DNA of 64,000 nucleotides from Macrostomum lignano (GCA_002269645.1 NIVC01000551.1:186001-250000); one strand, 5' to 3'; shown: positions 14,519 to 59,048, counted from the stretch's first letter. The notes: generated by a model from the sequence alone, not told the origin. Numbers and translations: made by a program.

Positions 14519-17575
<3,057 letters not shown>

Positions 17576-26095: not shown

Positions 26096-26480
26096 ATGGC
26101 AAACCAGTGCTGTCAGAAGTCAAATTGCAAGGCATGTGCGAATGTGTAAGTGATTTGATTTGATTGCCGGTAGCTACAGTGCTACATACTGCTATTCGGT
26201 ATCTCAATTAGAGGCAATGCATGATACTGATCTTATCAATCCACTTCTTTCCTATTGAAGGTACTCGTATTGTGACTTTTCTTAAATTTGTTCTGTCCTT
26301 TCTTTCCTTTCTGCCAGAAGGAAAACCAATCCTAATGTGTGCTGCCAGCATCCGAATTGCGAGTAAGTCGATCATCTGTTTTAACAGCCGGAGTGCATTA
26401 ATTACTAATAAATATCTAGGAGAGGTCAAGTGCGTTTCTACAAGTACATTTTTATTCGAAAGATCTCGTTTGATGCGGTA
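26096..26480 (+). CDS. Candidate small Cys-rich gene A1; exons 26096-26145 and 26318-26362; third acceptor altered (truncated or pseudogenic)
   Basis: MANQCCQKSNCKACAN-GT|GTAAGT ... CCAG|A-RKTNPNVCCQHPNC-GA|GTAAGT, phase-compatible. Confidence 0.55.
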
Positions 26481-27509
26481 AAATATTGCTGTCTAAAATA
26501 TCACAGCTTGCTGTGTTGGTACATATACAGTGTTTCAATTCTTTTTCAGAGGCTGCGGTAACCGTTAATCCAATTGGCAACGCTCCTGGCTGCTGGCTGC
26601 TTTGTTTTAAATAAACACTTTGTTTACCAGTCGAGAGCAAACAGTTTTCATTAAAGACTTTTGTTCAATTTCTAACAGCTGATCTACAGTAACCACCAAT
26701 GCACGAGAGACCCCATCCCTGCACCCAAAAGTAATGCCTGAGTAATATAAAAGCGGAAACTCTGTCTTATTCCCTATATTGAGCTTAAAATTACCTTGAT
26801 ACCAAAGCATTCTTCAATTATTTGTTTATCTTCCTTGTAATCGCTGTTAAGTTTAACAAAGATACGCGCTCGCACTATAAAACAATCAAAAATTAAATTT
26901 AACAGCAACTTAGGTTCGTGCACAGCTGAGATTTCAACCATTTTAAATATTTTTATTTGCTTCTGTGATTTAGTCTGCGCAAACTTTTTATTCAAATATT
27001 TCCGTGAGCCGATTTCTTAGAATTCATAAAATACATGGATGGATTACCTACTCCCCACCCAGAATCTCAGTAAAACTGATGGATTTACGATCTTATCCAA
27101 TGCCTTTCGATGTCTTTCGTCTTTGCCAAGTGCTTGCTGGCTCAAGCCTTTGTCTAAAATTTGAGAAGACGTCAGTTATAAATTAAGATCAGTATAAGTA
27201 CCTGATGTGAGCGCAAGAGAGACGAAAGCTGCAATAGACCAAATTGAAATGTCGCCTAGGTATGGCAATGATTCCAAGTGCATTATTGCGAGGTCGAATG
27301 ACCAAAAAAGCAATTTGCTCAGCTCACTATTTTGTATTGCTGCAAAATGATGAATTTGGCATGTAGCTGGTAGATGCTACCAGCAAAAAGTAAGGAATTG
27401 CCTTGTAGGGGCTATGTACCTGTACGAACTATCGTATATGAGTACATTTACCGTTCGACAATGTACTCGTAGCTGAACTTCTTTTTCAGCGTGAGTGTTT
27501 CAATTAAGT

Positions 27510-28250
27510 GTCAGTAGTGTGACTCTCCCAGTGTCAGTATGACTCTCCCAGTGTCAGTGTGACTCTCCCAGTGTCAGTGTAACTCACTATCCCAGTGTCA
27601 GTGTGACTCTCCCAGTGTCAGTGTGACTCTCCCAGTGTCAGTGTGACTCTCCCAGTGTCAGTGTGACTCTCCCAGTGTCAGTAGTGTGACTCTCCCAGTG
27701 TCAGTAGTGTGACTCTCCCAGTGTCAGTAGTGTGACTCTCCCAGTGTCAGTAGTGTGACTATCCCAGTGTCAGTGTGACTCTCCCAGTGTCAGTGTGACT
27801 CTCCCAGTGTCAGTGTGACTCTCCCAGTGTCATTGTGACTCTTCCAGTGTCAGTGTGACTCTCCCAGTGTCATTGTGACTCTTCCAGTGTCAGTGTGACT
27901 CAGTGTGATTCTCCCAGTGTCAGTGTGACTCTCCCAGTGTCATTGTGACTCTCCCAGTGTCTGTGTGACTCTTCCAGTGTCAGTGTGACTCAGTGTGACT
28001 CAGTGTGACTCTCCCAGTGTCAGTGTGACTCTCCCAGTGTCATTGTGACTCTTCCAGTGTCAGTGTGACTCTCCCAGTGTCATTGTGACTCTTCCAGTGT
28101 CAGTGTGACTCAGTGTGATTCTCCCAGTGTCAGTGTGACTCTCCCAGTGTCATTGTGACTCTCCCAGTGTCTGTGTGACTCTTCCAGGGTCAGTGTGACT
28201 CAGTGTGACTCAGTGTGACTCTCCCTGTGTCTGTGTGACTCTTGTGACTC
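27510..28250. repeat. 20-bp minisatellite (GTGTGACTCTCCCAGTGTCA)
   Basis: Direct inspection. Orthologous arrays at 51120 and 56225. Confidence 0.95.
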
Positions 28251-28779
28251 TACCTCTTCTCTGAAGTCCATTAACAACTGCAGAATAGAGCAACTGATTC
28301 TTGGTCGATGAAAATGCGTTTAAAAGTTCATTTAGAAACGCCAGGAGTCTCGGTGTAAGTGCTCACCTCATACTCGAACTAGCACGAGTGTTAAGCCTAG
28401 ATGAATTCTACTTCCACGACCTTGTTACTAAGTTATAATTTGACAAAACGTGTGCTCTAAATTAAGATTTGCACAGAATAAACTCATAGCATTAATGGAG
28501 AAAAAGCAAAGTGGCCGTCGGTTACGTGTCGATTATTTATGGCACAAGTAACAGCTGGAGCCAACTCATTGATGCAAGATGATGAGCATCGAATGAAATG
28601 ATCTTAGACAAAAATGAGACTCGGCAACAGAACGCTGAGGTACTACCGTGTGGGGTCCATCTAAGGCTATATTTATTGCTGTTACAGTAAATACAGTACC
28701 GCTACAGTGCAGTAAAATTCGAAATTTTGCCTTTGACGAATAACTCTCACGAGAGGTTCACGGATCATTTCCATTCATC

Positions 28780-28823
28780 ATGGAGTGTTGCCAGGTGCAG
28801 AACTGCTCTGATTGCAAAAGGCT
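28780..28823 (+). CDS. Candidate first micro-exon of Cys-rich gene A2 (MECCQVQNCSDCKR); downstream exons not found before the satellite and LINE
   Basis: ATG, CC-x4-C-x2-C, phase-2 donor GTAAGT. Paralogous to 52115 and 57452. Confidence 0.5.
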
Positions 28824-28950
28824 GTAAGTTTCGAACTTGCAAATTTGGGATAGCTATATTCTCCCACTGCTCAAGGCTGTAACTTAAGCATACGAGTACA
28901 TTATCCTTACCAATAAAGCATCCCTAAAAAGTATTCTATATTTTTCAGGT

Positions 28951-29412
28951 CTATCTATCATACTCATTTTGGCACCACTATCATACTCATTTTGGCACCA
29001 CTATCATACTCATTTTGGCACCACTATCATACTCATTTTGGCACCACTATCACACTCAGTTTGGCACCACTATCACACTCATTTTGGCGCCACTATCACA
29101 CTCATTTTGGCACCACTATCACCCTCATTTTGGCACCACTATCACACTCATTTTGGCACCACTATCACCCTCATTTTGGCACCACTGTCGCACTCATTTG
29201 GCACCACTATCACACTCATTTTGGTCTCACTGTAACACTCATTTTGGCAACACTATCACACTCATTTTGGCACCACTATCACACTCATTTTGGCGTCACT
29301 ATCACACTCATTTTGGTCTCACTGTAACACTGATTTTGGCACCACTATCACACTCATTTTGGCACTACTATCACACTAATTTTGGCACCACTATTACACT
29401 CATTTTGGCACC
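28951..29412. repeat. 23-bp satellite (CACTATCACACTCATTTTGGCAC), left part
   Basis: Direct inspection. The same unit resumes at 35294. Confidence 0.97.
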
Positions 29413-29533
29413 TTGACTTACTTGACTTAGCTGCAGGGCTGTCCCGGAGGGGACACAGCGGGAAGGCGCGGGCGCCCATTCCGCAAATCCCTGAACGGCC
29501 GACGCGTCGCTATGGACGGAGGTTTGGCGCCGC

Positions 29534-32500
29534 TCAGGGAGGTCCCCCAGTGTCGCCAGCAGCTATGGTGCTCTCTGGAAAGGAGAGTTCAGCCCTGCGG
29601 GTGGCCCGAAGGTAGCGCATGAGCTGATTAAAGTTTTCGGGTTTGCACGCTTCAGTAATAGATGTGTGTGGCCCGAGGTAAGTGAGTCTGGCCCGCGTTA
29701 AGGCGGGACAGATGCTGACGAAATGCTCAGCAGTTTCGTCACCTGAGTTGCAGAAACTACAGGTGGCGTTGGTGGCGTTGCCCTGCAGGTACTGGTGCCT
29801 GGAGAAGCAGCCGTGACCAGAGAGGGTCATGGTGGCAGCCCGGATGTCTCTGCGCGAGAGGCGCAAGAGGAGCTTCCAGAGCTGGTGAGAGGGCTGAGGG
29901 ACAGCGCCTCTGGATTGCCTGCAGTTCGTGCGGTTCGCCCAAGTCGAGCGGTGCTGAGTCCTGATCCACGCTTTGATGCGCGAGTCGATGACACAGCCAG
30001 GAATCGGGACAAGAGGTTCGGGGCCGAGAGAGGAGCCGGAGGCACCAACTTTTGCAAGGGTGTCAGCCAACTCATTTCCTCGGATCCCCACATGCCCCGG
30101 AACCCACTTAAGGTAATTTTGTTGGTGGAACCCAACACGTTGAGAAGTTTGATACAGTCGAGGACTGTAGCAGAGTTGGTGCTGCAGCCACTGATGGCGT
30201 GCAAGGCAGCTTGGCTGTCCGAATGGAAAATGATGTTCTTGCCAATAACGCCAGTGGCGAGAAGCTCTGCAGTGCAGGAGCTGATGGCCAGAACTTCATT
30301 TTGGAAAACACTGGAGTTTACCCCAGTGTATTGAGCGTGGGTAGCGATGACCCTCCCGTTCAGAAAGATTCCAACACCAAAGCCGGTGTTGGCTGACTGC
30401 TTAGAACCGTCGGTGTAGCTCACCAAGGTTCCATTGGTCATTGATGTTATCGCGCGAGTCGATAGCTACGGAGTAGCGCTGTCTCAGGTTGAGCGTTGAG
30501 GCAATGCCATCGGTGAAGACGCGATTGGCCTGACACTCGTTGAGAAAGTTGAGGCACAGGTCGCTATGCGGGGCAAGGTTCCGCTTAGCAGGTGCTCTCA
30601 TGTAAATGAATTTGACGCCGGCATCAATTAGACGCCGCGTCGTTCTAGCCGCCTCACCCCTGACGAAGAGGTCAAGAGGCGGTAGATTAAGGAAGGCCCC
30701 CATGCCAGCAAAGGGCGTGGACCTGGTGGCGTTGCAGATGAGCCTACACGCTCTGCCTTGGATCGTGTTGAGCAGGTCTGCATGGCTTTTGACCTGGGTA
30801 GCGCTAACCCAGACAACAGAGGCGTACGTAATGGCAGGTCTAACTACGGAAGTATAGATCCACCAAAGCCGCTTTGGGGATAGACCCCAAGAAGTGCCAA
30901 GTGCTCGTCGGAGCTGGGCCAGGATGGCCGAGGCACGCTTGGCTTTTGCTTTCACGTGGAAGGACCAGTTGAGCCGGTGGTCAAGTATGACCCCGAGACA
31001 TCTGGTCTGGTGCGCGAAGGCAATATCTCTGCCGTAGAGCTGCAGAGGACGTATGTTCCAGCGTAGTCTGCTGGTAAACATAATGGCAACGGTTTTGGGC
31101 TCAGAGAGTTCCAGACCATTGTCATTGGCCCAGGATTCTGCTTTGCGGATAAAGCTCTGCATCAGATCCCTGAGCGTGCTGGGAGACGGTCCTGCCACAA
31201 TGGCCGTGACGTCATCAGCATACCCGACTTTGAAGACGGGGTCGGGTCGTGAGTCACTCAGAAGAGCGTCCATGACCAGGTTCCAGAGCGTCGGGGTGAG
31301 GACTCCGCCTTGGGGTCCACCCTTACAGACTCTGGTGGAGGCAGTTTGCCCAAGAAGTTGGGCAGTGACCGTACGGTTGGAGATCATGTACATGATCCAC
31401 CGTATGAGGGTAGCATAAGCTTTGCGATTTTGAAGGGCCCTCTGAAACACTTCAAAAATAACGTTGTCGAAGGCGCCAACAATGTCAAGAAAGAGAGCCA
31501 GAGCGTAACCGTCACCCAGTACCGCCCGTTCAATCTTCTCGACAATCGCATGCAGGGCGCTGTCAGTCGACCTCCCGGTACGGAAGGCGTGCTGATTATT
31601 GCTGAGGGGCATCGCTGTCAGCTCGCAGGACAGCAGCCGCCAGAGAATAAGCCTCTCAGTGAGCTTAAGCATTGCTGACGTTAAGCTAATAGGCCGGAAG
31701 GCCTTGACGCTTTGGTAGTCACCCTTCCCAGGTTTGGGAATAAAGACTACCCGAGCTTCAGTCCAGCATTTGGGAACGTATCCCAGTTGGATAGAGGTCC
31801 GCATAAGATTGCGGGTGAGTCTCAGGAACGAGGGTATCTTGGCTGCTTCACGAAAGAGGACAGGGTAGATACCATCAGGTCCAGGAGATTTGAAGGGTTT
31901 GAAGGTTCTGACCGCACGAGCGATTAGGTCTTCAGTGACAATGCCCGCCGCTAGGGTGGCTCCATCCATCGAATGGTTGGGCTCCGGTCTAGCAGTAGGT
32001 ACCCTCGGGAAGAATGTGCTGAGTAAATGCTGAAGCACTTCTTCAGGGTCTTTAGTAAGAGAGCCATCATCTTTTTTGATCATGGCTAATTTGGACATTT
32101 TGTCCATTGTAAGGGCCTTGACAAGCCTAGAAGTAGGTCTGTCTTGATCCAATTCATTGCAGAATTGGCGCCACTTACATTCCTTGGCCTTGCGCACTTC
32201 AGATTTGAAATTGCGGGAGGCTTGCCGGAAAAGCTCCATGTCCTCCGAATTTCCGGTCTTCATGGCACGGCGATGAAGGCTTTTGGCCTTCCGCCTGAGT
32301 TTCCCCAGCTCTGGGTTCCACCACGGCGCCGAGGTCTTGCCTTTGTAGGCGCGAGCAGGACAAGCCGCTTCGTAGGCTGCAATAATGCAACCTGTCAGCG
32401 TCTCAGCCATATGATCCACATCCTCGCAGGTCTCAATCGGACGTAAGTCCGTGAGTTCCTGCAGGTGCAGATCAAGGGCAGCCTTGTAGGCCGCCCAATC

Positions 32501-33241
32501 AGTGTTGCGGATATTGCGCCTCCAAGTGATCGGAGACTGGGTTTTAGTGTCCGCGATGTTAAAGACGATAAAGCAGTGGTCGGACAGGGAGGGCTCCTCA
32601 GACCAGACTCTCCACTCCTCAACTCTGTCAAAGAGTCTTGGGGTAACGAGTGTGGCGTCGAGGACCTCGGTCCATCTGCCATTATTAAAAGTAGGAGTGC
32701 TGCCGCGGTTGCAGAGCATGAGGTTTGTGTTAGAGATGAGGGCCAGAAGCTCCTCTCCTCTAGTGTTGGTATCTTTCCTGCCCCAGTGCTTGTGGTGCGC
32801 GTTGAGGTCGCCCCCTAAGCACAGCTCAGCGTTCTGGGACTCGCAGCACTGCGCAAGGCGCAGTAAACTCTCGGGAGCAGGGTCTCTGTCGCCTGGGATA
32901 TAAACCGAGGCAACGAGACGCGTACGCGGAGAGAGATGATTAGATTGGATGACGCAAAGGTCTCCATCAGAGAGATCAGTCCTCAGCCAAGCCTGGAGAT
33001 GGCTAGCAGCGAGGATAGCCGCTCTAGGGCGGCTGTTCCCCGGGCCACACACATAAAAATCAGAGTAGCCAGAGGGAATGTTGGGCAACTTACCGTTGCG
33101 CATCCAGGGTTCCTGGATCAGGATGAGGCCTGGCCTGTACAGCTCAGCAATCTTCATCAGATTTACTGACGCAGATACGCAATGCTGTAGATTTATTTGC
33201 AGACAGAATGTCGCTCCTTTGGCAGCGTGGAGCTTAGTCAT
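29534..33241 (-). CDS. LINE ORF2 (endonuclease, reverse transcriptase, RNase H, zinc knuckle), broken by two frameshifts near 30420 and 30110
   Basis: LQINLQH, IQEPW, GDLNAHH, SDH (APE). KSPGPDG, FRPISL, GPQGGVLTP, YADD (RT). YTDGS, E, SDSQA, WVPGHVGIRGNELAD (RNase H). CSFC..ETAEHF..C. Confidence 0.92.
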
Positions 33242-33368
33242 ACTGTATTAAATGCAAAGTTTGGCTAGAGCCCCGGGCCATCAAGGAGACTTGGACAACA
33301 GATCGTCCTCGTCCCAGGCCGCTGGGGCTTGACTGGGAGATGGGAGTTGGTCGACGTCCATGGCCTCC

Positions 33369-34769
33369 TCACCCCCACCGGCCCCCCCCAGCAGAGCCCT
33401 CAGGCTCCGATGACAGGATGGAGGAAGCTTCCTCACCTGCATCTTTACCTTCAGACCCCACCAGGGTGGCCGAGGAGAGCTCGGATTCCGAAGACCCGGC
33501 CTCGTCCTCAACTCCTTCTCCGACTAGCAGGTTTGGTTCCCGGGGCTTGGCCGGAGCCGTTACCGCGGTCGCCGAACTGCTGCTAGCAGAGGGGCGAGAT
33601 GCAGCTTTGGCTTTGGGATCGGCTTGCGCCTTTCCTTGGGCCTTAGACTGCGCCCCGCTCTTGCCGGAGATGCCGGGGTTGGCAGTAGCCTTCCCTTTGG
33701 CAGACTTTCCTCGGCGCATCTTGAGCTTGAGGGCACCCAGCTGGAAAGAGGATCCATTAGGGTACCGACTCGCCCAAGTGCTGGAAAGGCCGAGGACAAT
33801 TGAGTTGCCCGTCTCCCCCCTGCGGACTTGGCGGTGATACACCAGTCCACTAGCAGGGAAGTCGGGATTCAGACGCAGTAGGACCCGGCGGATAACGTCT
33901 GGTCCAGCTGCGGTGCTCTTAGCAGGGACGAAAACCACATAGGGTATCGTCTTTGGACGCTGGCCCTCGCGAAGAAAAAGAGCTCCGCCAAGGTCAGCAT
34001 CCAAGGAGACCGTCGGTAGCCGCTGGAGCAGCTGCCGAGCGTCCTCCTCGCTGCTAGGAGCAATAAGAACGAATGTGCTTCGCAGCACCATCCGCTCAAT
34101 GCCGATGGAGATTCCCTCCTCGACAGTCAGCTCAATCAGATAGGAGTCAACAGCACTCCACACTTTTTGAAGCTGATCAGTGGTCCAGTCCTGGTCGCGA
34201 CCTTGGATGATCACTCCCGGGATTTTGGCCTTGGCCTTCGCCGCAAAGGTAGCTCCCGAAGGAACCTCCTTGTTGGCAGTGGCCATTTGTTGCGCCGTGG
34301 TTTCGGCCTCAGCAGCCGCGGCAGCATCTCCAGGGAGCGCCGCCGCTGAACTACTGGAGCTTCCAGCGGCCGGCCCGTCTGGTTGCCTTGGGACGCCAGT
34401 CGCTTCAGCGTCCATGGTGGACGCCGCCGCTTTGGCCCCCGCAGCTCCCTGCTTGGCCTGCCTTTTGGCGCGTTGTTTAGCGCGTTTGCGCTCAAGCCGA
34501 GCCCGCTGAGCTTCATCAGATCTGCCAGATTTGGCCGGTCCTTTAGGCTCAGAGCTCGCGGTTCCCTTAGATCCACCAGCGGAGCTGGCAGGTCTTTGGG
34601 TATTATGAGTTTGGTAGCTCTGGTCGGATCTGCCAGCAGAGCCAGCCGGTCCTTCCTTTGCCACAGTTGAATCAGTCGGTTGGGATCTGCCAGCAGGGCC
34701 GGCTGGTCCTTCGGACTGAGGTTAGGGTTTAGAAGGGTCCCCGTCCCTAGAAAAAGCTTGGTTATCCAT
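33369..34769 (-). CDS. LINE ORF1 (gag-like, DUF4780-like core, no obvious CCHC); in-frame TAA at 34724-34722
   Basis: ATG at 34769 (and 34787) is in frame with the 431-aa ORF but interrupted at codon 16. Basic Ala-rich N-terminus and core RRVLLRLNPDF..GNSIVLGL. Confidence 0.8.
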
Positions 34770-35293: not shown

Positions 35294-37770
35294 CACCACT
35301 ATCACACTCATTTGGGCGCCACTATCACACTCATTTTCGTCTCACTGTAACACTCATTTTGGCACCACAATCACACTCAGTTTGGCACCACTATCACACT
35401 CATTTTGGCGTCACTATCACACTCATTTTGGCACCACTATCATACTCATTTTGGCACCACTATCACACTCATTTTGGTCTCACTGTAACACTCATTTTGG
35501 CACCACTATCACACTCATTTTGGCACCACTATCACACTCATTTTGGCGTCACTATCACCCTCATTTTGGCACCACTATCACACTCAGTTTGGCACCACTA
35601 TCACACTCATTTTGGCACCACTATCACACTCATTTTGGCACCACTATCACACTCATTTTGGCGTCACTATCACACTCATTTTGGCGCCACTATCACACTC
35701 ATTTTGGCGCCACTATCACACTCATTTTGGCACCACTATCACACTCCTTTTTTGTCTCACTGTAACACTCATTTTGGCACCACAATCACACTCATTTTGG
35801 CGCCACTATCACACTCAGTTTGGCACCACTATCACACTCAGTTTGGCAGCACTATCACACTCATTTTGGCACCACAATCACACTCATTTTGGCGCCACTA
35901 TCACACTCATTTTGGCACCACTATCACACTCAGTTTGGCACCACTATCACACTCATTTTGGCACCACTATCACACTCATTTTGGCACCACTATCACACTC
36001 ATTTTGGCGCCACTATCACACTCATTTTGGCACCACTATCACCCTCATTTTGGCGTCACTATCACACTCATTTTGGCACCACTATCACACTCATTTTGGC
36101 GTCACTATCACACTCATTTTGGCACCACTATCACACTCAGTTTGGCACCACTATCACACTCATTTTGGCACCACTATCACACTCAGTTTGGCACCACTAT
36201 CACACTCATTTTGGCACCACTATCACACTCATTTTGGCGTCACTATCACCCTCATTTTGGCACCACTATCGCACTCAGTTTGGCACCACTATCACACTCA
36301 TTTTGGCGTCACTATCACACTCATTTTGGCGCCACTATCACACTCATTTTGGCGCCACTATCACACTCATTTTGGCACCACTATCACACTCCTTTTTTGT
36401 CTCACTGTAACACTCATTTTGGTCTCACTGTAACACTCATTTTGGCACCACTATCACACTCATTTTGGCACCACTATCACACTCATTTTGGCACCACTAT
36501 CACACTCATTTTGGCACCACTATCACACTCATTTTGGCACCACTATTACACTCATTTTGGCACCACTATCACACTCATTTTGGCGTCACTATCACACTCA
36601 TTTTGGAACCACTATCACACTCATTTTGGCACCACTATCACACTCATTTTGGCACCACTATCACACTCATTTTGGCGTCACTATCACACTCATTTTGGCG
36701 CCACTATCACACTCATTTTGGCGCCACTATCACACTCATTTTGGCACCACTATCACACTCCTTTTTTGTCTCACTGTAACACACATTTTGGCACCACAAT
36801 CACACTCATTTTGGCGCCACTATCACACTCATTTTGGCACCACTATCACACTCAGTTTGGCACCACTATCACACTCATTTTGGCACCACTATCACACTCA
36901 GTTTGGCAGCACTATCACACTCATTTTGGCACCACTATCACACTCATTTTGGCACCACTATCACACTCAGTTTGGCACCACTATCACACTCATTTTGGCA
37001 CCACTATCACACTCATTTTGGCGTCACTATCACACTCAGTTTGGCACCACTATCACACTCATTTTGGCACCACTATCACACTCAGTTTGGCACCACTATC
37101 ACACTCATTTTGGCGTCACTATCACACTCATTTTGGCACCACTATCACACTCAGTTTGGCACCACTATCACACTCATTTTGGCGTCACTATCACACTCAT
37201 TTTGGCACTACTATCACACTGATTTTGGCACCACTATCACACTCATTTTGGCACCACTATCACACTCATTTTGGCATCACTATGACACTCATTTTGGCAC
37301 CACTATCACACTCATTTTGGCGTCACTATCACACTCATTTTGGCACCACTATCACACTCATTTTGGCACCACAATCACACTCATTTTGGCATCACTATGA
37401 CACTCATTTTGGCACCACTATCACACTCATTTTGGCGTCACTATCACACTCATTTTGGCACCACTATCACACTCATTTTGGCGTCACTATCACACTCAGT
37501 TTGGCACCACTATCACACTCATTTTGGCACCACTATCACACTCAGTTTGGCACCACTATCACACTCATTTTGGCGTCACTATCACCCTCATTTTGGCACT
37601 ACTATCACACTCATTTTGGCGCCACTATCACACTCATTTTGGCACCACTATCACACTCATTTTGGCACCACAATCACACTCATTTTGGCACCACTATCAC
37701 ACTCATTTTGGCACCACTATCACACTCATTTTGGCACCACTATCACACTCATTTTGGCATCACTATGACA
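35294..37770. repeat. 23-bp satellite, right part (about 107 copies)
   Basis: Direct inspection. It explains the 833-aa and related spurious ORFs. Confidence 0.98.
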
Positions 37771-38211: not shown

Positions 38212-38982
38212 ATGAAAAGCTTGATGGACGAACAAGGACCAAGCCTTCATTTCCAACCCATTGTGACACGACCGTCAAAGTCACCAGAGTCGCCTTCAAA
38301 ATCATCAGCAACTACTGCACATCTGAAGTCACACTTGGATGAATGTCCAATTCCTGAGATCATGGTTTCTACGAAATTTAGGAAACTTGCGAAACCTACT
38401 GGCAGTATTTACGGCTTCAAGAATGCAGCTACGAATATGGTTGAAAAAGTTGCAGCCAACCCCCTATTCGACAAGAACACGGTGCTCACAGACTTAACGT
38501 ACTCTCTATGCTGCATTCCCAACCTGCCAGTTAGACTGACCAGTTACCACAGCGTCAGAGGCATTTACGCTCGGTACTTGATGCCAGATGAGGCAGAGAG
38601 GAAGACCACTGATTTGGAAGAGAAGAAACAGTCAGTTAGGCAGATGCTGCCTGCAAATCTGCGTGAAGTTTTCACGGAAGAAGAATTCCGTGAAGATGAA
38701 AAGCTGTGTGTAACTGAGCTGGCAATCAGCATTGCAGACGGCGAGTGGGCGTTTGACGAAGAGGAAGCGAAAAGCTTGCTTCAGAACTCAGCTGAAATCG
38801 TTCGCAGTCACCTGCAAGCCCTGAAACTGAGTACCGATCAGCCTCGGGACCGCTGCCCAGTGGCGGAGGCCTGGTTCTGCCTCATGGTGACCGTGTGGAG
38901 CCGCCTCAGGACTGTCGTGACCGAGCCTGAGGACGAGGCTGAGAAGTTCAAAGCATGTATGGGCAACAGGACTGTGAGTTGA
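38212..38982 (+). CDS. Uncharacterised intronless ORF, 256 aa, paralogous to the C-terminal part of 39822..41729
   Basis: Non-repetitive, protein-like ORF. C-terminal LAISIADG..LLQNSAEIVRSHLQALKLS..VAEAWF aligns with the neighbouring ORF. Confidence 0.7.
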   Translation: MKSLMDEQGPSLHFQPIVTRPSKSPESPSKSSATTAHLKSHLDECPIPEIMVSTKFRKLAKPTGSIYGFKNAATNMVEKVAANPLFDKNTVLTDLTYSLCCIPNLPVRLTSYHSVRGIYARYLMPDEAERKTTDLEEKKQSVRQMLPANLREVFTEEEFREDEKLCVTELAISIADGEWAFDEEEAKSLLQNSAEIVRSHLQALKLSTDQPRDRCPVAEAWFCLMVTVWSRLRTVVTEPEDEAEKFKACMGNRTVS

Positions 38983-43525: not shown

Positions 43526-43552
43526 AGCTGAAGAGCTCAAAGCCGTGGAGCA

Positions 43553-47337: not shown

Positions 47338-47368
<31 letters not shown>

Positions 47369-49137: not shown

Positions 49138-49655
49138 CCTTATATAGCCTTCCCAGTCGCCGCTCCAAGGCCGTTTCCATGACTCCCTCTCTCTGATTGG
49201 ATGCCGGCAGAATGACGTCAGAATGAGTCATGATGAGAAGCATGAGAACGGCCTAGCAACATGAGAAATGGGAAAATTGCGCAATCCGGAGGTGGGGTGG
49301 GGGGATAATTGGCGCAGCGGAAGGTCGAGAAAGTGTTGCGCAAGCAAACATTGAGAACAATGGGGCGGGGGTCGAGAACAAAGGAATTGGAAATCGGGGA
49401 TAATTGGGGGAGAATCGAGAACAATAGAAAAGCAAACATTGGAGAAAAGGTGATAATTAGGTGCGAAAACGAGAACAATAGAAAGAGAAAATCGGAGAAA
49501 ATGTGACAATTGGTGGGGATAAAGAGAACAAAAGAAGCAAAAACGAGAACAATAGAAGCGGAGGTGGGGTGGGTGTCGCATGAGAAATTTGGGGAGGAGA
49601 ACAATGGTATGAGAAAAGATTGCGCAAGAGAAGGGGATGAGTCATCGATGAGTCA
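49138..49655 (-). promoter_or_regulatory. Promoter-like motif cluster: TATA/CArG-like, CCAAT, CRE, three AP-1 sites
   Basis: CCTTATATAG 49138, ATTGG 49196, TGACGTCA 49213, TGAGTCA at 49224, 49638 and 49649. A - strand donor CCG|GTAAGC lies at 48817/48816. Confidence 0.5.
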
Positions 49656-50062
49656 TCGAGGGGAAGGAGGGGTCACACGACTTGCGTCACCGTTTGGGAG
49701 TTTGAGAAGGGATGGGGACAGTGAGCACACAAAATACTGTAAGTAGACGCAGAGAAAGGGGGGACAGCGCAGGAAAATAGTGCGAAAAGGGGCAAAAAGA
49801 GGGGAGACAGGAAAATTGCATGAAGAATAGGGCGGAGCGCAGAGGAGATAGGGTAGAGAGGGAGGTACAAAGAGGGAGGGGGAGCTCCGGAAAGGCAAGT
49901 GTGGCGGCAGGGGAGACGGAGCCAAGGCAGCAGGGGGGTGCAGCAGAGCGGGAGTCTCCAGGCCTGGTCGGAGACCTGGCCGAGTCTCAACAGCTCTGTG
50001 CATGGAAGATATTGTGACTTTTCCTAAAATAAAGTTCTTATTCTTTCTATCCATTTTGCCAG

Positions 50063-50107
50063 AAAGGAATCCCATCCTGATAGGTGCTGCCAGCACCCGA
50101 ACTGCGG
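50063..50107 (+). CDS. Candidate second micro-exon of Cys-rich gene B1 (KESHPDRCCQHPNC); its own first exon is missing
   Basis: GCCAG| 45 nt |GTAAGA, with the same length and phase as 26318-26362 and 55038-55082. Confidence 0.5.
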
Positions 50108-51119
50108 GTAAGACGATCATATGTTTTAACAGAGTTGCGCATATTAATTACGCTCGTACGAATAAAGATATTGAAAGAGGTCAAGAGCGTATCTATTTTG
50201 CTATAGTATAGCTAAGACTCCAACTCAACGACTGCAGTTGCCGGATTGTTGTTAGTAACTGGAAAGAAAGAAAAAATGAATCTACGGTCATAAATCATAT
50301 ATACAAAAAATGAAAATATCTCAAAATCAGAGTAACACTTTGTTCCCAAATTATCAGTAAGCAGTTTTAATTAAACCCTGTAATTTTAATCCTACAGTAA
50401 ACACCGCTTAAAAAATTAATGTCTGATTAATACTCTATTGAGCAATTAGAAGTACACGTTGGACTTTTTGCTAAAACTTTCCACAAAGAATTTTTATCTT
50501 CTATGGATCTTCAATCGCTTCAAAATAGGCTAAAATTTCAGATCAGCTTAAATAATGTTTTTGTTGTCTCTGGTTTAGCCTTTGTACTCGTATAAAACTT
50601 TTTACTTTTAGAGGCTGATTATTACCGATTTGTTATCAGATTCTTAAAATACATCGATGTATTACCTAGAGTGTACTCCTAATCAGAATCTCAGTAAAAC
50701 TGATGGATTTACGATAAATCCAATGCCTTTCGATGTCTTTCGTCTTTGCCAAGAGCTTGTTGGCTCAAGCTTTTGTCTAAAATTTGAGAAGACATCAGTT
50801 ATAAATTAAGATCAGTATATGTACCTGATGTGAGCGCAAGACCAAACGCAAGAGCTGCAATAAACCAAATTGAAGTGTCGCCCATATATGGCAATGATTC
50901 CAAGTGCACAATTGCGATCTCGAATGACCAAAAAAGCAATTTAGTCAGCTCACTAGTTTGTAGTGCTGCAGGATGATGAATCTGGCATTTACAGGGTAGA
51001 TCTACCAGCAAAAATTAAGGTACTGCCTTGTAGGGGCTGTGTACCTGTAACTCTATCGCATGCATTTACCGTTCTACAATGTAGCTTAACTGCATTTTCA
51101 GTGTGAGTGTTTCCATTAA

Positions 51120-51570
51120 GTGTCAGTAGTGTGACTCTCCCAGTGTCAGTAGTGTGACTCTCCCAGTGTCATTGTGACTCTCCCAGTGTCTGTGTGACTC
51201 AGTGTGACTCTCCTAGTATCAGTAGTGTGACTCTCCCAGTGTCAGTAGTGTGACTCTCCCAGTGTCAGTAGTGTGACTCTCCCAGTGTCAGTAGTGTGAC
51301 TCTCCCAGTGTCATTGTGACTCTTCCAGTGTCAGTGTGACTCAGTGTGATTCTCCCAGTGTCAGTGTGACTCTCCCAGTGTCATTGTGACTCTTCCAGTG
51401 TCAGTGTGACTCAGTGTGACTCTCCCAGTGTCATTGTGACTCTCCCAGTGTCATTGTGACTCTCCCAGTGTCTGTATGACTATTCCAGTGTCAGTGTGAC
51501 TCAGTGTGACTCAGTGTGACTCTCCCAGTGTCTGTGTGGCTCAGTGTGACTCTCCCAGTGTCTGTGTGAC
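51120..51570. repeat. 20-bp minisatellite (GTGTGACTCTCCCAGTGTCA) in copy B
   Basis: Direct inspection. Confidence 0.95.
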
Positions 51571-52114
51571 TCTACCTCTTCTTTGAAGTCCATTAACAAC
51601 TGCAGAATAGAGCAACTGATTCTTGGTCGATGAAAATGCGTTTAAGAGTTCATTCAGAAACGCCAGGAGTCTGTGTGTAAGTGCCCACCTCATACTCGAA
51701 CTAGCACGAGAGTGTTAAGCCTAGATGAGTTCTATTTCCACGACCTTGTTGACCAAGTTTAAATTTGACAAAAACGTGTGCTCTAAATTAGGATTTGCAC
51801 AGAATACACTCGAAGTACTCATTGCTTTGATGGACAAGAAGCAAAGTGGCCGTCGGTTACGTGTCGATTATTCATGGCAGCTGTAGCCAACTCACTCGGT
51901 TCGCATTGCTGCAAAACGATGAGCATCCAATGAAGACGATCTAGTTAAAAATGAGACTCGACAACATAACGCTGAGGTACTACCGTATGGGCTCATCTAA
52001 GTCAGTATTTATTGCTGTTACAGTAAAAACAGTACCGCTACAGTGCAGTAAAATTCGAAATTTTGCCTTTTGACGACTAAATTACGCGAGGTTCACGGAT
52101 CATTTGCATCCACC

Positions 52115-52161
52115 ATGGATCAGTGTTGTTCGGTGCAGGGCTGCCCTCGTTGTAAAAGTGT
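52115..52161 (+). CDS. Candidate first micro-exon of Cys-rich gene B2 (MDQCCSVQGCPRCKS)
   Basis: CACCATGG context, CC-x4-C-x2-C, phase-2 donor GTAAGT. Confidence 0.55.
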
Positions 52162-52387
52162 GTAAGTTTTTCGAATTGCGAGACGCTCAAGGTTTCTACA
52201 GAAATGTACATTACAAGTACAAAGGTACAAATGTGCCTTTCTATTTTCTATTCCGTTGAGACCTGGTGATAAAACATGCTCCCCGAATCTTCGCTCCCCG
52301 TAATAGCGATATATCGCGGCTCACAGGCAGAGCTGCATTATACGCTTGTAATAATACACTGAAACGAGGAGATACACCAGAGTCTGT

Positions 52388-52715
52388 CTGGGAGGCTGGC
52401 CCAGCAACTGAGGATCTGGGAGGCTGGCCCAGCAACTGAGGATCTAGGAGGCTGGCCCAGCAACTGAGGATCTGGGAGGCTGGCCCAGCAACTGAGGATC
52501 TGGGAGGCTGACCCAGCAACTGGGAATCTGGGAGGCCGGCACAGCAACTGAGGATCTGGGAGGCTGGCCCTGCAACTGAGGATCTGGGAGGCTGGCCCAG
52601 CAACTGGGAATCTGGGAGGCCGGCACAGCAACTGAGGATCTGGGAGGCTGGCCCAGCAACTAGGAATCTGGGAGGCTGGCCCAGCAACTGAGGATCTGGG
52701 AGGCTGGCCCAGCAA
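52388..52715. repeat. 28-bp minisatellite (GGGAGGCTGGCCCAGCAACTGAGGATCT)
   Basis: Same family as 2385 and 57722. Confidence 0.95.
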
Positions 52716-52909
52716 CCAGAGTCTGCAGTATTTCATTGTTTTGTTGTATTATTATATATTTGAATCAATCTCAAAGCTCTGTGGCATGCGGTCATTTAAG
52801 CATTAATTACCAATAAAATATCCCACAAAGTATTTCATTTTTCCTGTTGTTAATTAAGCCGTTAATTAAGCCGTCTCTCCAGTAGCCCATCTGACTCCCA
52901 CAGTAGCAC

Positions 52910-54750
52910 ATTGGTGTGTCAGTGACTGCATTGGTGTATCAGTGACTGCATTGGTGTGTCAGTGACTGCATTGGTGTATCAGTGACTGCATTGGTGTGTC
53001 AGTGACTGCATTGGTGTGTCAGTGACTGCATTGGTGTATCAGTGACTGCATTGAGTGACTTCATTGGTGTGTCAGTGACTGCATTGGTGTGTCAGTGACT
53101 GCATTGGTGTATCAGTGACTGCATTGGTGTGTCAGTGACTGCATTGGTGTATCAGTGACTGCATTGAGTGACTTCATTGGTGTGTCAGTGACTGCATTGG
53201 TGTGTCAGTGACTGCATTGGTGTATCAGTGACTGCATTGGTGTGTCAGTGACTGCATTGAGTGACTTCATTGGTGTGTCAGTGACTTTTCTGGTGTGTCT
53301 GTCAGTGACTGCACTGGTGTGTCAGTGACTTCATTGGTGTGTCAGTGACTGCATTGGTGTGTCAATGACTGCATTTGTGTGTCAGTAACTTCATTGGTGT
53401 GTCAGTGACTTCATTGGTGTGTCAGTGACTGCATTGGTGTGTCAGTGACTGCATTGGTGTGTCAGTGACTGCATTGGTGTGTCAGTGACTGCATTGGTGT
53501 GTCAGTGACTGCATTGGTGTGTCAGTGACTGCATTGGTGTGTCAGTGACTGCATTGAGTGACTTCATTGGTGTGTCAGTGACTGCATTGGTGTTTCAGTG
53601 ACTGCATTGGTGTGTCAGTGACTGCATTTGTGTGTCAGTAACTTCATTGGTGTGTCAGTGACTGCACTGGTGTGTCAGTGACTTCATTGGTGTGTCAGTG
53701 ACTGCATTGAGTGACTTCATTGGTGTGTCAGTGACTGCATTGGTGTGTCAGTGACTGCATTTGTGTGTCAGTGACTTCATTGGTGTGTCAGTGACTGCAT
53801 TGGTGTGTCAGTGACTGCATTGAGTGACTTCATTGGTGTGTCAGTGACTGCATTGGTGTGTCAGTGACTGCACTGGTGTGTCAGTGACTGCATTTGTGTG
53901 TCAGTAACTTCATTGGTGTGTCAGTGACTGCACTGGTGTGTCAGTGACTGCACTGGTGTGTCAGTAACTTCATTGGTGTGTCAGTGACTTCATTGGTGTG
54001 TCAGTGACTGCATTGGTGTGTCAGTGACTGCATTGGTGTGTCAGTGACTGCATTGGTGTGTCAGTGACTGCATTGGTGTGTCAGTGACTTCATTGGTGTG
54101 TCAGTGACTGCATTGGTGTGTCAGTGACTGCATTGGTGTGTCAGTGACTTCATTGGTGTGTCAGTGACTGCATTGGTGTGTCAGTGACTGCATTGGTGTG
54201 TCAGTGACTGCATTGGTGTGTCAGTGACTGCATTGGTGTGTCAGTGACTGCATTGGTGTGTCAGTGACTGCATTGGTGTGTCAGTGACTGCATTGAGTGA
54301 CTTCATTGGTGTGTCAGTGACTGCATTGGTGTGTCAGTGACTGCACTGGTGTGTCAGTGACTGCATTTGTGTGTCAGTAACTTCATTGGTGTGTCAGTGA
54401 CTGCACTGGTGTGTCAGTGACTTCATTGGTGTGTCAGTGACTGCATTGAGTGACTTCATTGGTGTGTCAGTGACTGCATTGGTGTGTCAGTGACTGCATT
54501 TGTGTGTCAGTGACTTCATTGGTGTGTCAGTGACTGCATTGGTGTGTCAGTGACTGCATTGAGTGACTTCATTGGTGTGTCAGTGACTGCATTGGTGTGT
54601 CAGTGACTGCACTGGTGTGTCAGTGACTGCATTTGTGTGTCAGTAACTTCATTGGTGTGTCAGTGACTGCACTGGTGTGTCAGTGACTGCATTTGTGTGT
54701 CAGTAACTTCATTGGTGTGTCAGTGACTTCATTGGTGTGTCAGTGACTAC
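52910..54750. repeat. 20-bp satellite (GTCAGTGACTGCATTGGTGT), about 90 copies with higher-order structure
   Basis: Direct inspection. The same series of variant monomers occurs at about 53625 and 54364. Confidence 0.97.
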
Positions 54751-54800
54751 ATATTGTAGGGCTTTATAATTTTTAAAAATAATTCATCGTATTTGATCGA

Positions 54801-55520
54801 ATGGCGAATGAATGCTGTCGAAGGCCAAATTGCCCAAATTGTGCGAATATGTAAGTGATCTGGCTTCAATACTGGTAGCTACAGCTTGTTACATACTGAT
54901 ATCCGCTATCTGAATTAGCGCCAAAGCATGATACTTACCAATCGACTTACCAATTAACTTACCAATCGAATTCCTTCCCGCTTTATTGAGGATATTTTGA
55001 CTTGTTATTTAATAAATTTTTTTTTCTTTTCTGACAGAAGAAGACTCTATACTAATGCGTGCTGCCACCACCCAACCGACGGGTAAGTCGATCATTTGTT
55101 TTAGTAATTAATGATAATAATAATTGAATATGCACCTGTCTTTATGAGCAGATGGGCAAATAATAGCTCAGCCGAAACTTTTCTGTCCATGGACTATTCA
55201 GATATGAAGGCTGCGTACGGCTGTTCAGTCCAAGGACTGGAGGGTCGCCACACACCCTCAATTACCCCAGCTAATGCTGGCACCCTACCTCGTGCAACCC
55301 CTATTTTATCTGATCTGTTTTAATAGAGTGCATTAATTACGAATAAAGTTCTAAGAAAGGTCAAGAGCGATTCTACGAGTATGTTTCTCCGAAGGATCTC
55401 GTCTGCTGCGCTAGCATGCTGTATTGGTACATGCATGTACAGTGTTCCAAAAAACTTTCAGAGGCTGCGGTGGCCGAGGATCCAACTCAACGATTGGGAT
55501 GGTTGGCATCTTTTTTCTAG
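54801..55520 (+). CDS. Candidate complete small Cys-rich gene C1; exons 54801-54850, 55038-55082, 55395-55426, 55462-55520; 61 aa MANECCRRPNCPNCANIRRLYTNACCHHPTDGISSAALACCIEAAVAEDPTQRLGWLASFF
   Basis: All three introns are GT-AG and phase-consistent. The PTQRL frame of the last exon is also retained in copy B. Confidence 0.55.
55190..55300 (-). mobile_element. SINE 3' fragment (same family as 4675..4850) in intron 2 of gene C1
   Basis: CCCTCAATTACCCCAGCTAATGCTG is the exact reverse complement of a segment near 4745-4770. It is absent from copies A and B. Confidence 0.65.
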
Positions 55521-56224
55521 CGACTGGAGCAGTTATTCTTATCGGTGCTTTCGGATCAAAAAGATAAATCTATCTTACTTTCTCGAAAGCAAATACATGA
55601 GTTAATTATTCGTGAGATTGATTGATGAGATGTAAGTATAACAAACATACGCACTCGTATTTTAAAACGATAAAAATTCATTTAACAGAAACCTGTCATG
55701 TATGTTCGTGAACTATTTTTCATTGTTTCTGTGATTTAGGCTGAGTAAACTTTCTACTGCTCTAGGGGGCCGATCATTTTTAATTTGGTATCAGATTCTT
55801 AAAATACATGGATGTTATTACCGACTCCTAATCAGAATCTCAGTAAAACTGATGGATTTATGATCTATCCAATGCCTTTCAATGTCTTTCGTCTTTTCCA
55901 AGAGCTTCGTTTGTCTAAAATTTGAGAAGACGTCAGTTATAAATTAAGACCAGACTAAAGCTGCAATAGACCAAATTGAAATGTCGCATAAATGTGGCAA
56001 CCATACAAGTGCATAATTGCGAGCTCGAATGACCAAAAAAGCGATTTAGTCAGCTCACTAGTTTGTAGTGCTGCAGGATGATGAATTTGGCATTTACAGG
56101 GTAGATCTACCAACAAAAACTAAGGTACTGCCTTGTAGGGGCTGTGTACCTGTAACTCTATCGCGTGCATTTACCGTTCTACAATGTAGCTTAACTGCCT
56201 TTTCAGTGTGACTGTTTCCATTAG

Positions 56225-56925
56225 GTGTCAGTAGTGTGACTCCCCCAGTGTCAGTAGTGTGACTCTCCCAGTGTCATTGTGACTCTTTCCATTAGGTGTC
56301 AGTAGTGTGACTCCCATGGCGTCATTGTGACTCTCCCAGTGTCAGTGTGACTCTTCTAGTGTCAGTGTGACTCTCCCATTGTCAGTGGGACTTTCCCATT
56401 GTCAGTGGGACTCTCCCAGTGTCTGCAGTGTGACTCTCCCATTGTCAGTGTGACTCTTCCATTGTCAGTGGGACTCTTCCATTGTCAGTGGGACTTTCCC
56501 ATTGTCAGTGTGACGCTCCCAGTGTCAGTAGTTTGACGCTCCCATTGTCAGTATGACTCTCCCAGTGTCAGTGTGACTCTCCCAGTGTCAGTATGACTCT
56601 CCCAGTGTCAGTGTGGCTCTCGCAGTGTCAGTATGACTCTCCCAGTGTCAGTGTGGCTCTCCCAGTGTCAGTGTGGCTCTCCCAGTGTCAGTATGACTCT
56701 CCCAGTGTCAGTGTGGCTCTCCCAGTGTCAGTGTGGCTCTCCCAGTGTCAGTGTGGCTCTCCCAGTGTCAGTGTGGCTCTCCCAGTGTCAGTATGACTCT
56801 CCCAGTGTCAGTGTGGCTCTCCCAGTGTCAGTGTGGCTCTCCCAGTGTCAGTGTGACGCTCCCAGTGTCAGTAGTTTGACGCTCCCATTGTCAGTAGTGT
56901 GACTCTCCCAGTGTCAGTGTGACTC
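56225..56925. repeat. 20-bp minisatellite (GTGTGACTCTCCCAGTGTCA) in copy C
   Basis: Direct inspection. Confidence 0.95.
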
Positions 56926-57451
56926 TACATCTTCTCTGAAGTCCATTAACAATTGCAGAATAGAGTGACTGATTCTTGGTCGATGAAAATGCGTTTAAAA
57001 ATTCATTCAGAAACGCCAGGAGTCTGTGTGTAAGTGCCCATCTCATACTCGAACTAGCACGAGAGTGTTAAGCCTAGATGAATTCTATTTCCACGACCTT
57101 GTTGACCAAGTTTAAATTTGACAAAACGTGTGCTCTAAATTAAGACTTGCACAGTATAAACTCATAGCTTTGATGGAGAAGAAGCAAAGTGGCCGTCGGT
57201 TACGTGTCGATATTCATGGTAGCCAACTCACTCGGTTCGCATTGCTGCAAAATGATGAGCATCCAATGAAGACGATCTAGTTAAAAAATGAGACTCGACA
57301 ACATAACGCTGAGGTACTTTCGTATGGGGTCCATCTAAGACAATATTTATTGCTGTTACAGTAAATACAGTACCGCTACAGTGCAGTAAAATTCGAAATT
57401 TTGCATTTGACGACTAAATTACGCGAGGTTCACGGATCATTTGAATCCACA

Positions 57452-59048
57452 ATGGGTCTGTGTTGTTCGGTGGAGGACTGCCCTCGTTGTAAAAGTGTGT
57501 AAGTTTTTCGAATTGCGAGACGCTTAAGGTCTATTTTCTATTCCGTGATAAAACTTGCGGAGATCATCAGTAGCTTAACTCCGCGCGCTACGATAGACAA
57601 AGGAATTCTACGAGTAGCCCGAGTTTATCTTCACTCCCCGTAATATCAGGCAGGCTCACATGCAGAGCTGCATTACACGCTTGTAATAATACACTGAACC
57701 AGACAGATACTCCAGAGTCTGTCTGGGAGGCTGGCCCAGCAACTGAGGATCTGGGAGGCTGGCCCAGCAACTGAGGATCTTGGAGGCTGGCCCAGCAACT
57801 GAGGATCTGGGAGGCTGGCCCAGCAACTGAGGATCTGGGTGGCTGGCTTAGCAACAGAGGATCTGGGAGGCTGGCCCAGCAACTGAGGATCTGGGAGGCT
57901 GGCCCAGCAACTGACACTCTGGGAGGCTGGCCCAGCAACTGAGGATCTGGGAGGCTGGCCCAGCAACTGAGGATCTGGGAGGCTGGCCCAGCAACTGAGG
58001 ATCTGGGAGGCTGGCCCAGCAACTGAGGATCTGGGAGGCTGGCCCAGCAACTGAGGATCTGGGAGGCTGGCCCAGCAACTGAGGATCTGGGAGGCTGGCC
58101 CAGCAACTGAGGAACTGGGAGGCTGCCCAGCAACTGAGGATCTGGGAGGCTGGCCCAGCAACTGAGGATCTGGGAGGCTGGCCCAGCAACTGAGGATCTG
58201 GGAGGCTGGCCCAGCAATCAGAGTCTGGAGTATTTCATTGTTTTGTTGTATTATTATATATTTGAATCAATCTCAAAGCTCCGTGGCATGCGGTCATTTA
58301 AGCATTAATTACCAATAAAATATCCCACAAAGTATTGCATTTTTCCTGTTGTTAATTAAGCCGTTAATTAAGCCGTCTCTCCAGTAGCCCATCTGACTCC
58401 CACAGTAGCCCAACTGACTCCCTTCCACAGTAGTCAATCTGACGCTCAGTATTAGTCGGACTTGCCATTTAGCATTCCGACCGCATAACTATGATTCCTC
58501 AAATTCATTTCGCAATCGTAAAGTTGCTTCTATATGAACATAATAATGTTCAAGTGAACTGGTAAAGTTATCAATATGAAATATACATTCAAGCGGTGCG
58601 AGAAAAGTTTTAGAGAAATCAATATTTCATTTATAGATATATGTACTGGTCCTAAAAACCTCCCTATAGTTGGTACTGGATCCTCTGGTGTTCCATTGAC
58701 CCTGCCATATGCCTCTGAAAACCGGTTATTTAAAATTATGACAATTTTAGAAGAGACGAACGCGAACGCCGCGACGGCTACCGTGACGGATGCTGCAAAC
58801 ACCCAAACAAAAAGTACGTTGTTTTGTTTATCTGCGCAGAATCGCCAGCCCGAAGCTCTTTCCGCTACATGCACAATGCTACTCATTTCAGTGGCTGCGA
58901 ACCCGCTACAGACAGTGTTGAACCTAAAATACTGGCGCCCAATGCTGGCGATGCTGCCATCGATGCTGGAGTTCCAATCAGGGAGCCAACTCTAGCGAGC
59001 AACGGTGAAGCGGATGACACAGTTGACTTCAACAGCGATATAATCTAG
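57452..59048 (+). CDS. Candidate Cys-rich gene C2; exon 57452-57498 (MGLCCSVEDCPRCKS) joined to an exon from 58751 (RDERERRDGYRDGCCKHPNK), which either reads through to TAG at 59048 (114 aa) or splices at 58813
   Basis: Phase-2 donor GTAAGT, acceptor TTTTAG|A at 58750/58751, and a CC-x-HPN motif like the other second exons. Confidence 0.5.
57722..58215. repeat. 28-bp minisatellite (GGGAGGCTGGCCCAGCAACTGAGGATCT)
   Basis: Same flanks as the 52388 array. Confidence 0.95.

Follow-up and report, generated by a model that had tools for sequence, protein, structure and literature searches.

A stretch of 64,000 nucleotides (nt) from Macrostomum lignano (GCA_002269645.1, contig NIVC01000551.1:186001-250000; here called the window, with positions counted from its first nucleotide) carries what is very probably a genuine tandem family of three-exon microprotein genes. 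The members share an N-terminal module, M-x(1-6)-CC-x4-C-x2-C-x(8-16)-CC-x-H-x5-C, whose coding sequence takes up exon 1 (44-50 nt) together with exon 2 (39-63 nt) and runs on into the first codons of the third exon. The three exons yield products of 37-89 amino acids (aa), which replaces the range of 40-115 aa given in an earlier note on this DNA. The reading that we favor, at a probability of about 0.55, is that a Cys7His module is joined to one of two interchangeable tails and that the proteins are cytosolic, membrane-tethered and metal-binding (or acylated). Within the window only genes M, A2 and B3 look intact, and of these only B3 is correctly represented in GenBank, leaving the family mostly unannotated. 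As far as is visible, it appears restricted to the Macrostomum lineage.

Motif census and gene models

The window was scanned in all six frames and with the expression ATG-(codon)0-5-TGY-TGY-N12-TGY-N6-TGY...GTAAG for exon 1. The peptide motif CC-x4-C-x2-C gave exactly six matches, all within ATG-initiated exons of 44-50 nt that end in phase 2 at a GTAAGT donor. The motif CC-x-H gave five matches, each within a phase-matched second exon, and no further match to either motif was found in any frame of the window. Shuffling the window 300 times with a first-order Markov model never produced a motif match. As the copies are paralogs, this excess reflects one gene family and not independent events.

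Six exon 1s: 26096-26145, 28780-28823, 52115-52161, 54801-54850, 57452-57498 (plus strand); 20562-20516 (minus strand)
Five exon 2s: 26318-26362, 50063-50107, 55038-55082, 58751-58813 (plus strand); 19574-19527 (minus strand)

The earlier note had described five first exons and four second exons on the plus strand, and all were found where it placed them, with the lengths of 44-50 nt, phase 2 ends, GTAAGT donors and peptide strings that it gave. A pattern search of the kind that it proposed (ATG...TGY-TGY...GTAAG), run on the window, recovered the same five plus-strand exons and one more, at 20562 on the minus strand. Its census was thus right for the exons listed and overlooked the minus-strand gene M (20562-19279), which lies outside the range it covered. 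In each gene the last exon is joined straight to exon 2. It starts with [A/T]GGCTG[C/T] in every copy (GGACTGC in gene M), and this start supplies the conserved Cys five residues past the His of exon 2. The gene models of the window are as follows.

Gene M, exon 1: 20516..20562, minus strand, 47 nt, phase 2, donor GTAAGT, MSQCCEVENCKDCQMA
Gene M, exon 2: 19527..19574, minus strand, 48 nt, acceptor ctctccag, donor GTACGA, QPLCGKRQCCKHTDG
Gene M, exon 3: 19279..19435, minus strand, 157 nt including the stop, RDCEDQTVSQGCDR, then a hydrophobic tail rich in Gly and Ala, VGIALAAGGVTFVGAVVLGSSTFGLGAALVVAGFVACV, and the stop
Gene A1, exon 1: 26096..26145, plus strand, 50 nt, MANQCCQKSNCKACANV
Gene A1, exon 2: 26318..26362, plus strand, 45 nt, RKTNPNVCCQHPNCE
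Gene A1, last exon, coding part only: 26550..26568, plus strand, GCGNR and the stop
Gene A2, exon 1: 54801..54850, plus strand, 50 nt, MANECCRRPNCPNCANI
Gene A2, exon 2: 55038..55082, plus strand, 45 nt, RRLYTNACCHHPTDG
Gene A2, last exon: 55462..55567, plus strand, GCGGRGSNST, then a single hydrophobic segment, IGMVGIFFLATGAVILIGAFG, then SKR and the stop
Gene B3, exon 1: 57452..57498, plus strand, 47 nt, MGLCCSVEDCPRCKSV; BOX15_Mlig009568g1 in GenBank
Gene B3, exon 2: 58751..58813, plus strand, 63 nt, RDERERRDGYRDGCCKHPNK
Gene B3, exon 3: 58892..59048, plus strand, 157 nt, NGCEPATDSV...DFNSDII and the stop; acidic, net charge -8, without a hydrophobic segment

The hand-spliced B3 product (57452-59048, 88 aa) equals the deposited protein PAA81081.1 / A0A267G4Y5 ('hypothetical protein BOX15_Mlig009568g1') residue for residue. 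That annotation was built by genome-guided RNA-seq assembly and TransDecoder, with repeat-overlapping transcripts removed first (PMC5730564). Transcripts therefore support both B3 junctions, 57498/58751 and 58813/58892; the former is a junction that the earlier note had proposed, and the note's claim of a real gene family is borne out by one member identical to a deposited RNA-seq-based gene model. GenBank calls no other gene in 47452-57451 of the window; the sister genes are minisatellite-laden, and the repeat filter of the annotation is a plausible reason for their being missing. The description of the cluster as hidden thus holds for most copies, which are in none of the protein collections searched, but not for B3, which is annotated.

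Gene M (20562-19279, minus strand) codes for an 83-aa product whose hydrophobic tail reaches a Kyte-Doolittle 19-residue maximum of 2.13. Its intron 1 holds a 47-bp x12 array of 99% identity at 19757-20320. Gene A2 (54801-55567) codes for 65 aa, with a tail maximum of 2.35, and its product looks tail-anchored, judging from the predicted protein. Gene A1 (26096-26568) has a premature stop compared with A2 and has lost the hydrophobic tail, and an AATAAA lies 42 nt further downstream; from its sequence A1 may be either a gene for a 37-aa peptide or a pseudogene. A four-exon A2, with junctions 55082-55395 and 55426-55462, had been suggested. We rejected the 32-nt segment 55395-55426 (plus strand) as an extra exon, since with it the frame stops at ...LASFF before the hydrophobic tail, and a counterpart exists in no paralog, including the deposited B3 model.

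Two further three-exon paralogs, N and B4, lie just outside the window. N codes for 79 aa with a hydrophobic tail, and B4, by a hand model, for 89 aa with an acidic tail of net charge -8. A deposited gene of 79 aa overlaps B4. It starts 20 nt past the Cys-rich ATG and in another frame; the deposited annotation probably mis-frames exon 1. None of seven guessed versions of this 79-aa product was found in a collection of 15e9 proteins.

Deposited 79-aa gene over B4: L001 19588-20164 (window-equivalent 67039-67615)

Searches for relatives returned nothing beyond the family itself. A profile search of 5.8e9 clusters recovered only the annotated B3 protein (PAA81081.1), and a 47-position hidden Markov model recovered the same single protein (E=1e-21) from 1.84e9 representative proteins, in keeping with the earlier proposal that the family is lineage-specific. 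A single-sequence protein search with gene M gave no relative. Pfam-A hmmscan with six family members at E<=10 gave nothing meaningful, including no metallothionein family and no PLAC8 (PF04749), and a sequence profile search of PDB gave nothing below E=1 (the best match, E=1.2, was to a glutaredoxin CPYC stretch and is noise). Exact look-up of the models for M, A1, A2, N, B4 and a B2-A2 chimera showed them to be absent from the 15e9-protein collection, and Rfam and tRNA scans gave no matches. The identifier 'Mlig009568' is mentioned neither in paper texts nor in the supplements of PMC5816591, PMC5730564, PMC7336406 and PMC12896417. A literature search by motif string returned venom papers only, with the family gene and the motif unmentioned.

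Conserved module, variable tails and divergence

Six complete paralogs were aligned, M, A1, A2 and B3 from the window and N and B4 from just outside it. Exactly eight columns are invariant (C4, C5, C10, C13, C25, C26, H28 and C34), and outside them pairwise identity is only ~30-35%. The variable residues between fixed cysteines noted earlier are thus seen here as seven Cys and one His that are invariant in all six paralogs.

The C-terminal hydrophobic anchors of three paralogs were absent from the earlier note's account. M, A2 and N end in a Gly/Ala-rich hydrophobic segment with Kyte-Doolittle 19-residue maxima of 2.1-2.35. In A2 this is one segment of 21 residues, and in M and N it comprises ~38-40 hydrophobic Gly/Ala-rich residues, which could form one long segment or a hairpin. 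No such segment is found at the C-terminus of B3, B4 or A1, and the acidic tails of B3 and B4 have maxima of 0.55-0.95. M, B3 and B4 have third exons of exactly the same length, 157 nt, despite the hydrophobic tail of the first and the acidic tails of the other two. Homology between acidic and hydrophobic tails was not demonstrated (M vs B3, shuffle p=0.67); N vs B3 compares better, but that comparison rests partly on the common NGC start. No member has a signal peptide, as had been claimed, all N-termini being polar, Cys-rich and without a hydrophobic stretch. A Met-Gly start is found in the two acidic-tail members, B3 and B4, alone.

Divergence was compared between copies and expressed as ratios of nonsynonymous to synonymous substitution rates (dN/dS) by Nei-Gojobori estimates. 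Among the three B-type first exons identity is 73-91%, with ~50-60% at the start of the intron, and the 180 nt upstream of them are 88-94% identical, better conserved than the exon itself. Between B3 and B4 the introns are 83-87% identical and the exons 76-81%, and the sole indel is in frame. The dN/dS values are 0.28-0.41 for the module, ~1.1-1.3 for pairs of B exon 1 and 2.5 for the B3/B4 tail; between the first exons of B2 and B3 there are four nonsynonymous changes and no synonymous ones. The pattern, in small numbers, suggests a fixed ligand scaffold whose non-ligand positions, together with the acidic tail, change at an intron-like (neutral) rate or faster. That these exons might be no more constrained than introns, which the earlier note had raised against its own proposal, is true of bulk nucleotides but not of ligand codons, frames and splice sites.

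Conserved stretch upstream of B exon 1: 57272-57451, 28600-28779, 51935-52114, plus strand, candidate shared promoter or 5' untranslated region

Proposed membrane-tethered metal binding and its alternatives

The module is followed by one of two interchangeable types of tail, coded by the remainder of exon 3: a Gly/Ala-rich C-terminal anchor (M, A2, N) or an acidic soluble tail (B3, B4). The lack of a signal peptide and the position of the anchor at the very C-terminal end suggest that the module lies at a membrane surface on the cytosolic side, a placement that makes disulfides unlikely. Eight conserved soft ligands in ~35 residues would fit two tetrahedral sites for Zn(II) or another thiophilic metal, and two tetrahedral sites, probably of Zn, would be the simplest arrangement. 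B3 and B4 may reach membranes by N-terminal myristoylation and palmitoylation in place of the anchor. The PROSITE N-myristoylation pattern is G-{EDRKHPFYW}-x2-[STAGCN]-{P}; B3 (MGLCCSV) fits it, with Cys adjacent. Taken alone, the membrane-tethered metal-binding part of this reading is plausible from the predicted proteins yet somewhat short of even odds. A bolder version, an undescribed Macrostomum-specific Cys7His two-metal micro-domain of ~35 residues on the cytosolic membrane face, with interchangeable anchors and with surface and tails under diversifying selection, is speculative and rather unlikely.

Several observations weigh against the favored reading. Transcript-based support exists for one member only, the rest being recognized by paralogy and splice-site logic. 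Very few sites underlie the dN/dS values, and the association of Met-Gly with the lack of an anchor is that of two genes against four; B4 (MGPVSSQCC), moreover, has a Pro after Gly, which the myristoylation pattern disfavors. AlphaFold2 with a three-row alignment gave no confident model of gene M (predicted local distance difference test score 45, predicted template modeling score 0.17). As the truncated A1 and the orphan exons make plain, the cluster is in part decaying. Finally, the profiles used in homolog searches span 41-47 positions, and being so short they could let distant relatives escape.

S-acylation of some of the cysteines would be the main rival of metal sites, or their complement. 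In its strict form it holds that the N-terminal Cys are mainly acylation sites, making a multiply palmitoylated membrane patch with no metal, like those of GAP-43, SNAP-25 and cysteine-string protein; we consider this unlikely, though to be taken seriously. In all copies the CC pair is within 2-7 residues of the initiator Met, the B3 N-terminus (MGLCCS) resembles a dual-acylation site, no signal peptide is present, and the hydrophobic tails imply a membrane context. Acylation patches, however, tolerate shifts in the number and spacing of Cys, whereas here CC-x4-C-x2-C and CC-x-H-x5-C are fixed and the His is invariant, a pattern that a folded ligand set suits better; the two roles are in any case not mutually exclusive. 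It is improbable that most copies are non-functional debris of recent segmental duplication in a repeat-rich neopolyploid genome, that expression is confined to B3 and possibly a further one or two, and that what looks like diversification is relaxed constraint. Exon divergence is not lower than intron divergence, A1 is truncated, the exon at 50063 is a fragment, B1 and B2 lack downstream exons, and B3 is the only member in any protein collection. Yet the eight ligand positions, the splice sites and the frames are all intact in six paralogs that are ~30-35% identical elsewhere, the single B3/B4 indel keeps the frame, module dN/dS is below 0.5, and an annotation that dropped repeat-overlapping transcripts (PMC5730564) would remove minisatellite-laden genes.

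Products that act as disulfide-rich peptides outside the cell or in a lumen, whether toxin-like, antimicrobial-like or reproductive, are quite improbable; they would leave the cytosol by non-classical export or by a reverse signal-anchor, with the hydrophobic segment moving the short N-terminal domain across the membrane. A local likeness of CC-x-HP-x-C to alpha-conotoxin framework I in two copies, the rapid evolution of non-Cys residues in tandemly amplified genes, and the basic SKR past the A2 hydrophobic segment, compatible with an N-out topology, speak for them. There is, however, no signal peptide or pro-peptide, and a hydrophobic segment so close to the C-terminal end is what one expects of tail-anchored proteins, which are inserted post-translationally and keep the N-terminus cytosolic. 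B3 and B4 are devoid of any such segment; the third conotoxin Cys is missing in several copies (CCHHPTD, CCKHPNK, CCKHTDG), and A2 and B3 each have an odd number of Cys (7 in total). The first exons could also be alternative, variable first exons of one complex locus, B2 being spliced to A2 exon 2 (55038) and B1 to 38208, where B1 would give a large unrelated protein a Cys-rich N-terminus. All exon 1s share phase 2, B2 could on phase grounds serve as an alternative first exon for 55038 with the frame kept, and 38208 is an acceptor in frame for B1 exon 1 (candidate junction 28823/38208) and for the 256-aa open reading frame (ORF) that starts at 38212. But an in-frame fit has a chance of 1 in 3, duplication boundaries account for the orphan exons without splicing, and the 38208 acceptor lies 4 nt before the ORF's own ATG, as a spliced-leader trans-splice site would; we regard this explanation as very improbable. 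Trans-splicing is common in M. lignano (PMC5730564).

The systems that the family calls to mind are resemblances only, each failing at least one testable defining feature. Like metallothioneins, the proteins are small, without a signal peptide and with CC and CxxC motifs, conservation is almost only of Cys, and the genes are tandemly amplified; unlike them, the module has ~20% Cys and not ~30%, an invariant His and fixed long-range spacing, and is fused to an anchor or an acidic tail. CYSTM proteins have their Cys inside the membrane segment and an N-terminus rich in Pro, Gln and Tyr. The family shares with them a size below 100 aa, the lack of a signal peptide and, in its anchored members, what may be one hydrophobic segment at the far C-terminal end, but its Cys are in a polar N-terminal module, its anchor is Gly/Ala-rich, and there is no Pfam match. 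Dual-acylated N-termini, such as MLCCM... of GAP-43 and MGC... of Src-family and G-alpha proteins, are short motifs of loose spacing; a Cys pair within a few residues of the initiator Met is common to both (MGLCCS in B3), whereas in the family eight ligand-like residues stand at fixed distances along ~35 residues. PLAC8/PCR proteins carry a CCXXXXCPC or CLXXXXCPC motif in a PLAC8 domain of ~100 aa, and are small, membrane-associated and implicated in metal handling. Likeness to them lies in CC-x4-C near the N-terminus, but the spacing is C-P-C there and C-x2-C here, and PF04749 gave no match at E<=10.

Schistosome micro-exon genes open with an exon for a signal peptide and close with a terminal exon, and in between runs a long series of symmetric micro-exons (6-36 nt, in multiples of 3); their products are secreted. 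These too are flatworm genes with small exons, clustered paralogs and small, fast-evolving products, but the family has three exons with an internal exon of 39-63 nt, no signal peptide (exon 1 lacks a hydrophobic leader), both junctions in phase 2, an exon 1 that is not a multiple of 3 and an exon 3 entered asymmetrically. The name 'micro-exon gene' given earlier does not hold in the schistosome sense, as the genes have three exons, asymmetric phases and no signal peptide. The judgment that the conotoxin resemblance is superficial stands, there being no signal or pro-region and the third Cys missing in several copies. Alpha-conotoxins (framework I, CC-C-C) are matched by the local CC-x-HP-x-C in two copies (26340, 50085), but the family lacks a signal or pro-region, the next Cys after CC-x-H is missing in A2, B3 and M, phylum and gene structure differ, and the location is probably cytosolic.

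Even in a model flatworm annotated from RNA-seq, an entire tandem family of proteins below 90 aa has thus been overlooked, for which short ORFs and minisatellite-filled introns are likely reasons. The compact, invariant Cys7His signature can be searched genome-wide. If the proteins bind metal at membranes, they would be among the smallest membrane-tethered metal-binding domains known, and a two-metal micro-domain would be a new, very small fold family, serving as a metal buffer or sensor or in a fast-evolving (e.g. reproductive) interaction. If they are instead a fast-evolving lineage-specific gene set, they would be a case study of duplicated microprotein genes that swap membrane anchors. Either way the discovery is local and lineage-specific and not the answer to a long-standing question; the family is new, and its interest moderate. 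M. lignano is used in marine toxicology and supports transgenesis and RNA interference, and function is therefore directly testable.

Duplication history and neighboring sequences

Self-comparison of the window showed that a unit, 26074-28831, is duplicated at 54779-57506 with ~80% identity, and that a partial third copy lies at 50010-52169. Of the five first exons and four second exons listed earlier, the first exons at 28780 and 52115 and the second exon at 50063 are probably orphans or relics left by truncated duplications.

B1, exon 1 only: 28780..28823, plus strand, 44 nt, MECCQVQNCSDCKRL
B2, exon 1 only: 52115..52161, plus strand, 47 nt, MDQCCSVQGCPRCKSV
Relic exon 2: 50063..50107, plus strand, RKESHPDRCCQHPNCG; no exon 1 upstream, intron 2 and tail region collapsed

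B1 (28780) is probably an orphan first exon, because the first copy of the unit ends ~8 nt past the B1 donor, at the start of a 23-bp minisatellite. B2 (52115) is probably another, without an exon 2 or 3 of its own, as a 20-bp minisatellite and, beyond it, gene A2 take the place of the rest of its intron. The second exon at 50063 is probably a relic, a pseudogene fragment. The idea that the units are transposon-borne ORFs was dropped: they contain no transposon protein domain, and the sole long interspersed nuclear element (LINE) is a later insertion into the B1 intron.

The 23-bp minisatellite (28955-29412 and 35294-37770, ~128 units in total) is split by this non-long-terminal-repeat retrotransposon. 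The LINE (29534-34664, minus strand) has an intact 946-aa ORF2, in which Pfam recognizes endonuclease (EEP) and reverse transcriptase domains, together with an ORF1-like frame of 431 aa. Further ORFs lie downstream at 29534-30441, and one of them gave no match against Pfam. An element of ~200 bp is common to A2 intron 2 (~55105-55310, an insertion compared with A1) and to the region downstream of N. The latter copy, at L001 ~18855-19045 (in the same L001 numbering, where 19588 is window-equivalent 67039), looks by eye like a tRNA-derived short interspersed element; ARAGORN calls no tRNA in it.

Mini- or microsatellites make up ~22.7% of the window, for example (AGT)154 at 16685-17147 and arrays of 16-31 bp at 657-1612, 2387-3118, 7447-8301, 21177-22008, 52909-54752 and 60943-61687. 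Exons of a V-type ATPase catalytic subunit A lie at 3607-7390 (minus strand; Pfam ATP-synt_VA_C, ATP-synt_ab, ATP-synt_ab_Xtn), and the introns of this gene hold long (CAGA)n and (AGAT)n microsatellites. Two long plus-strand ORFs, 38212-38982 (256 aa) and 39822-41729 (635 aa), have no Pfam match and no database relative, and on the opposite strand are a Helicase_C fragment and an ankyrin-repeat ORF, at 45109-45534 (minus) and 185-607 (minus). The cluster is flanked by two C-type-lectin-domain paralogs, at 22437-23300 and 59887-60280 (both plus strand), which share 92% nucleotide identity over ~390 nt; the first of them shows 47% identity with a UniRef protein from M. lignano.

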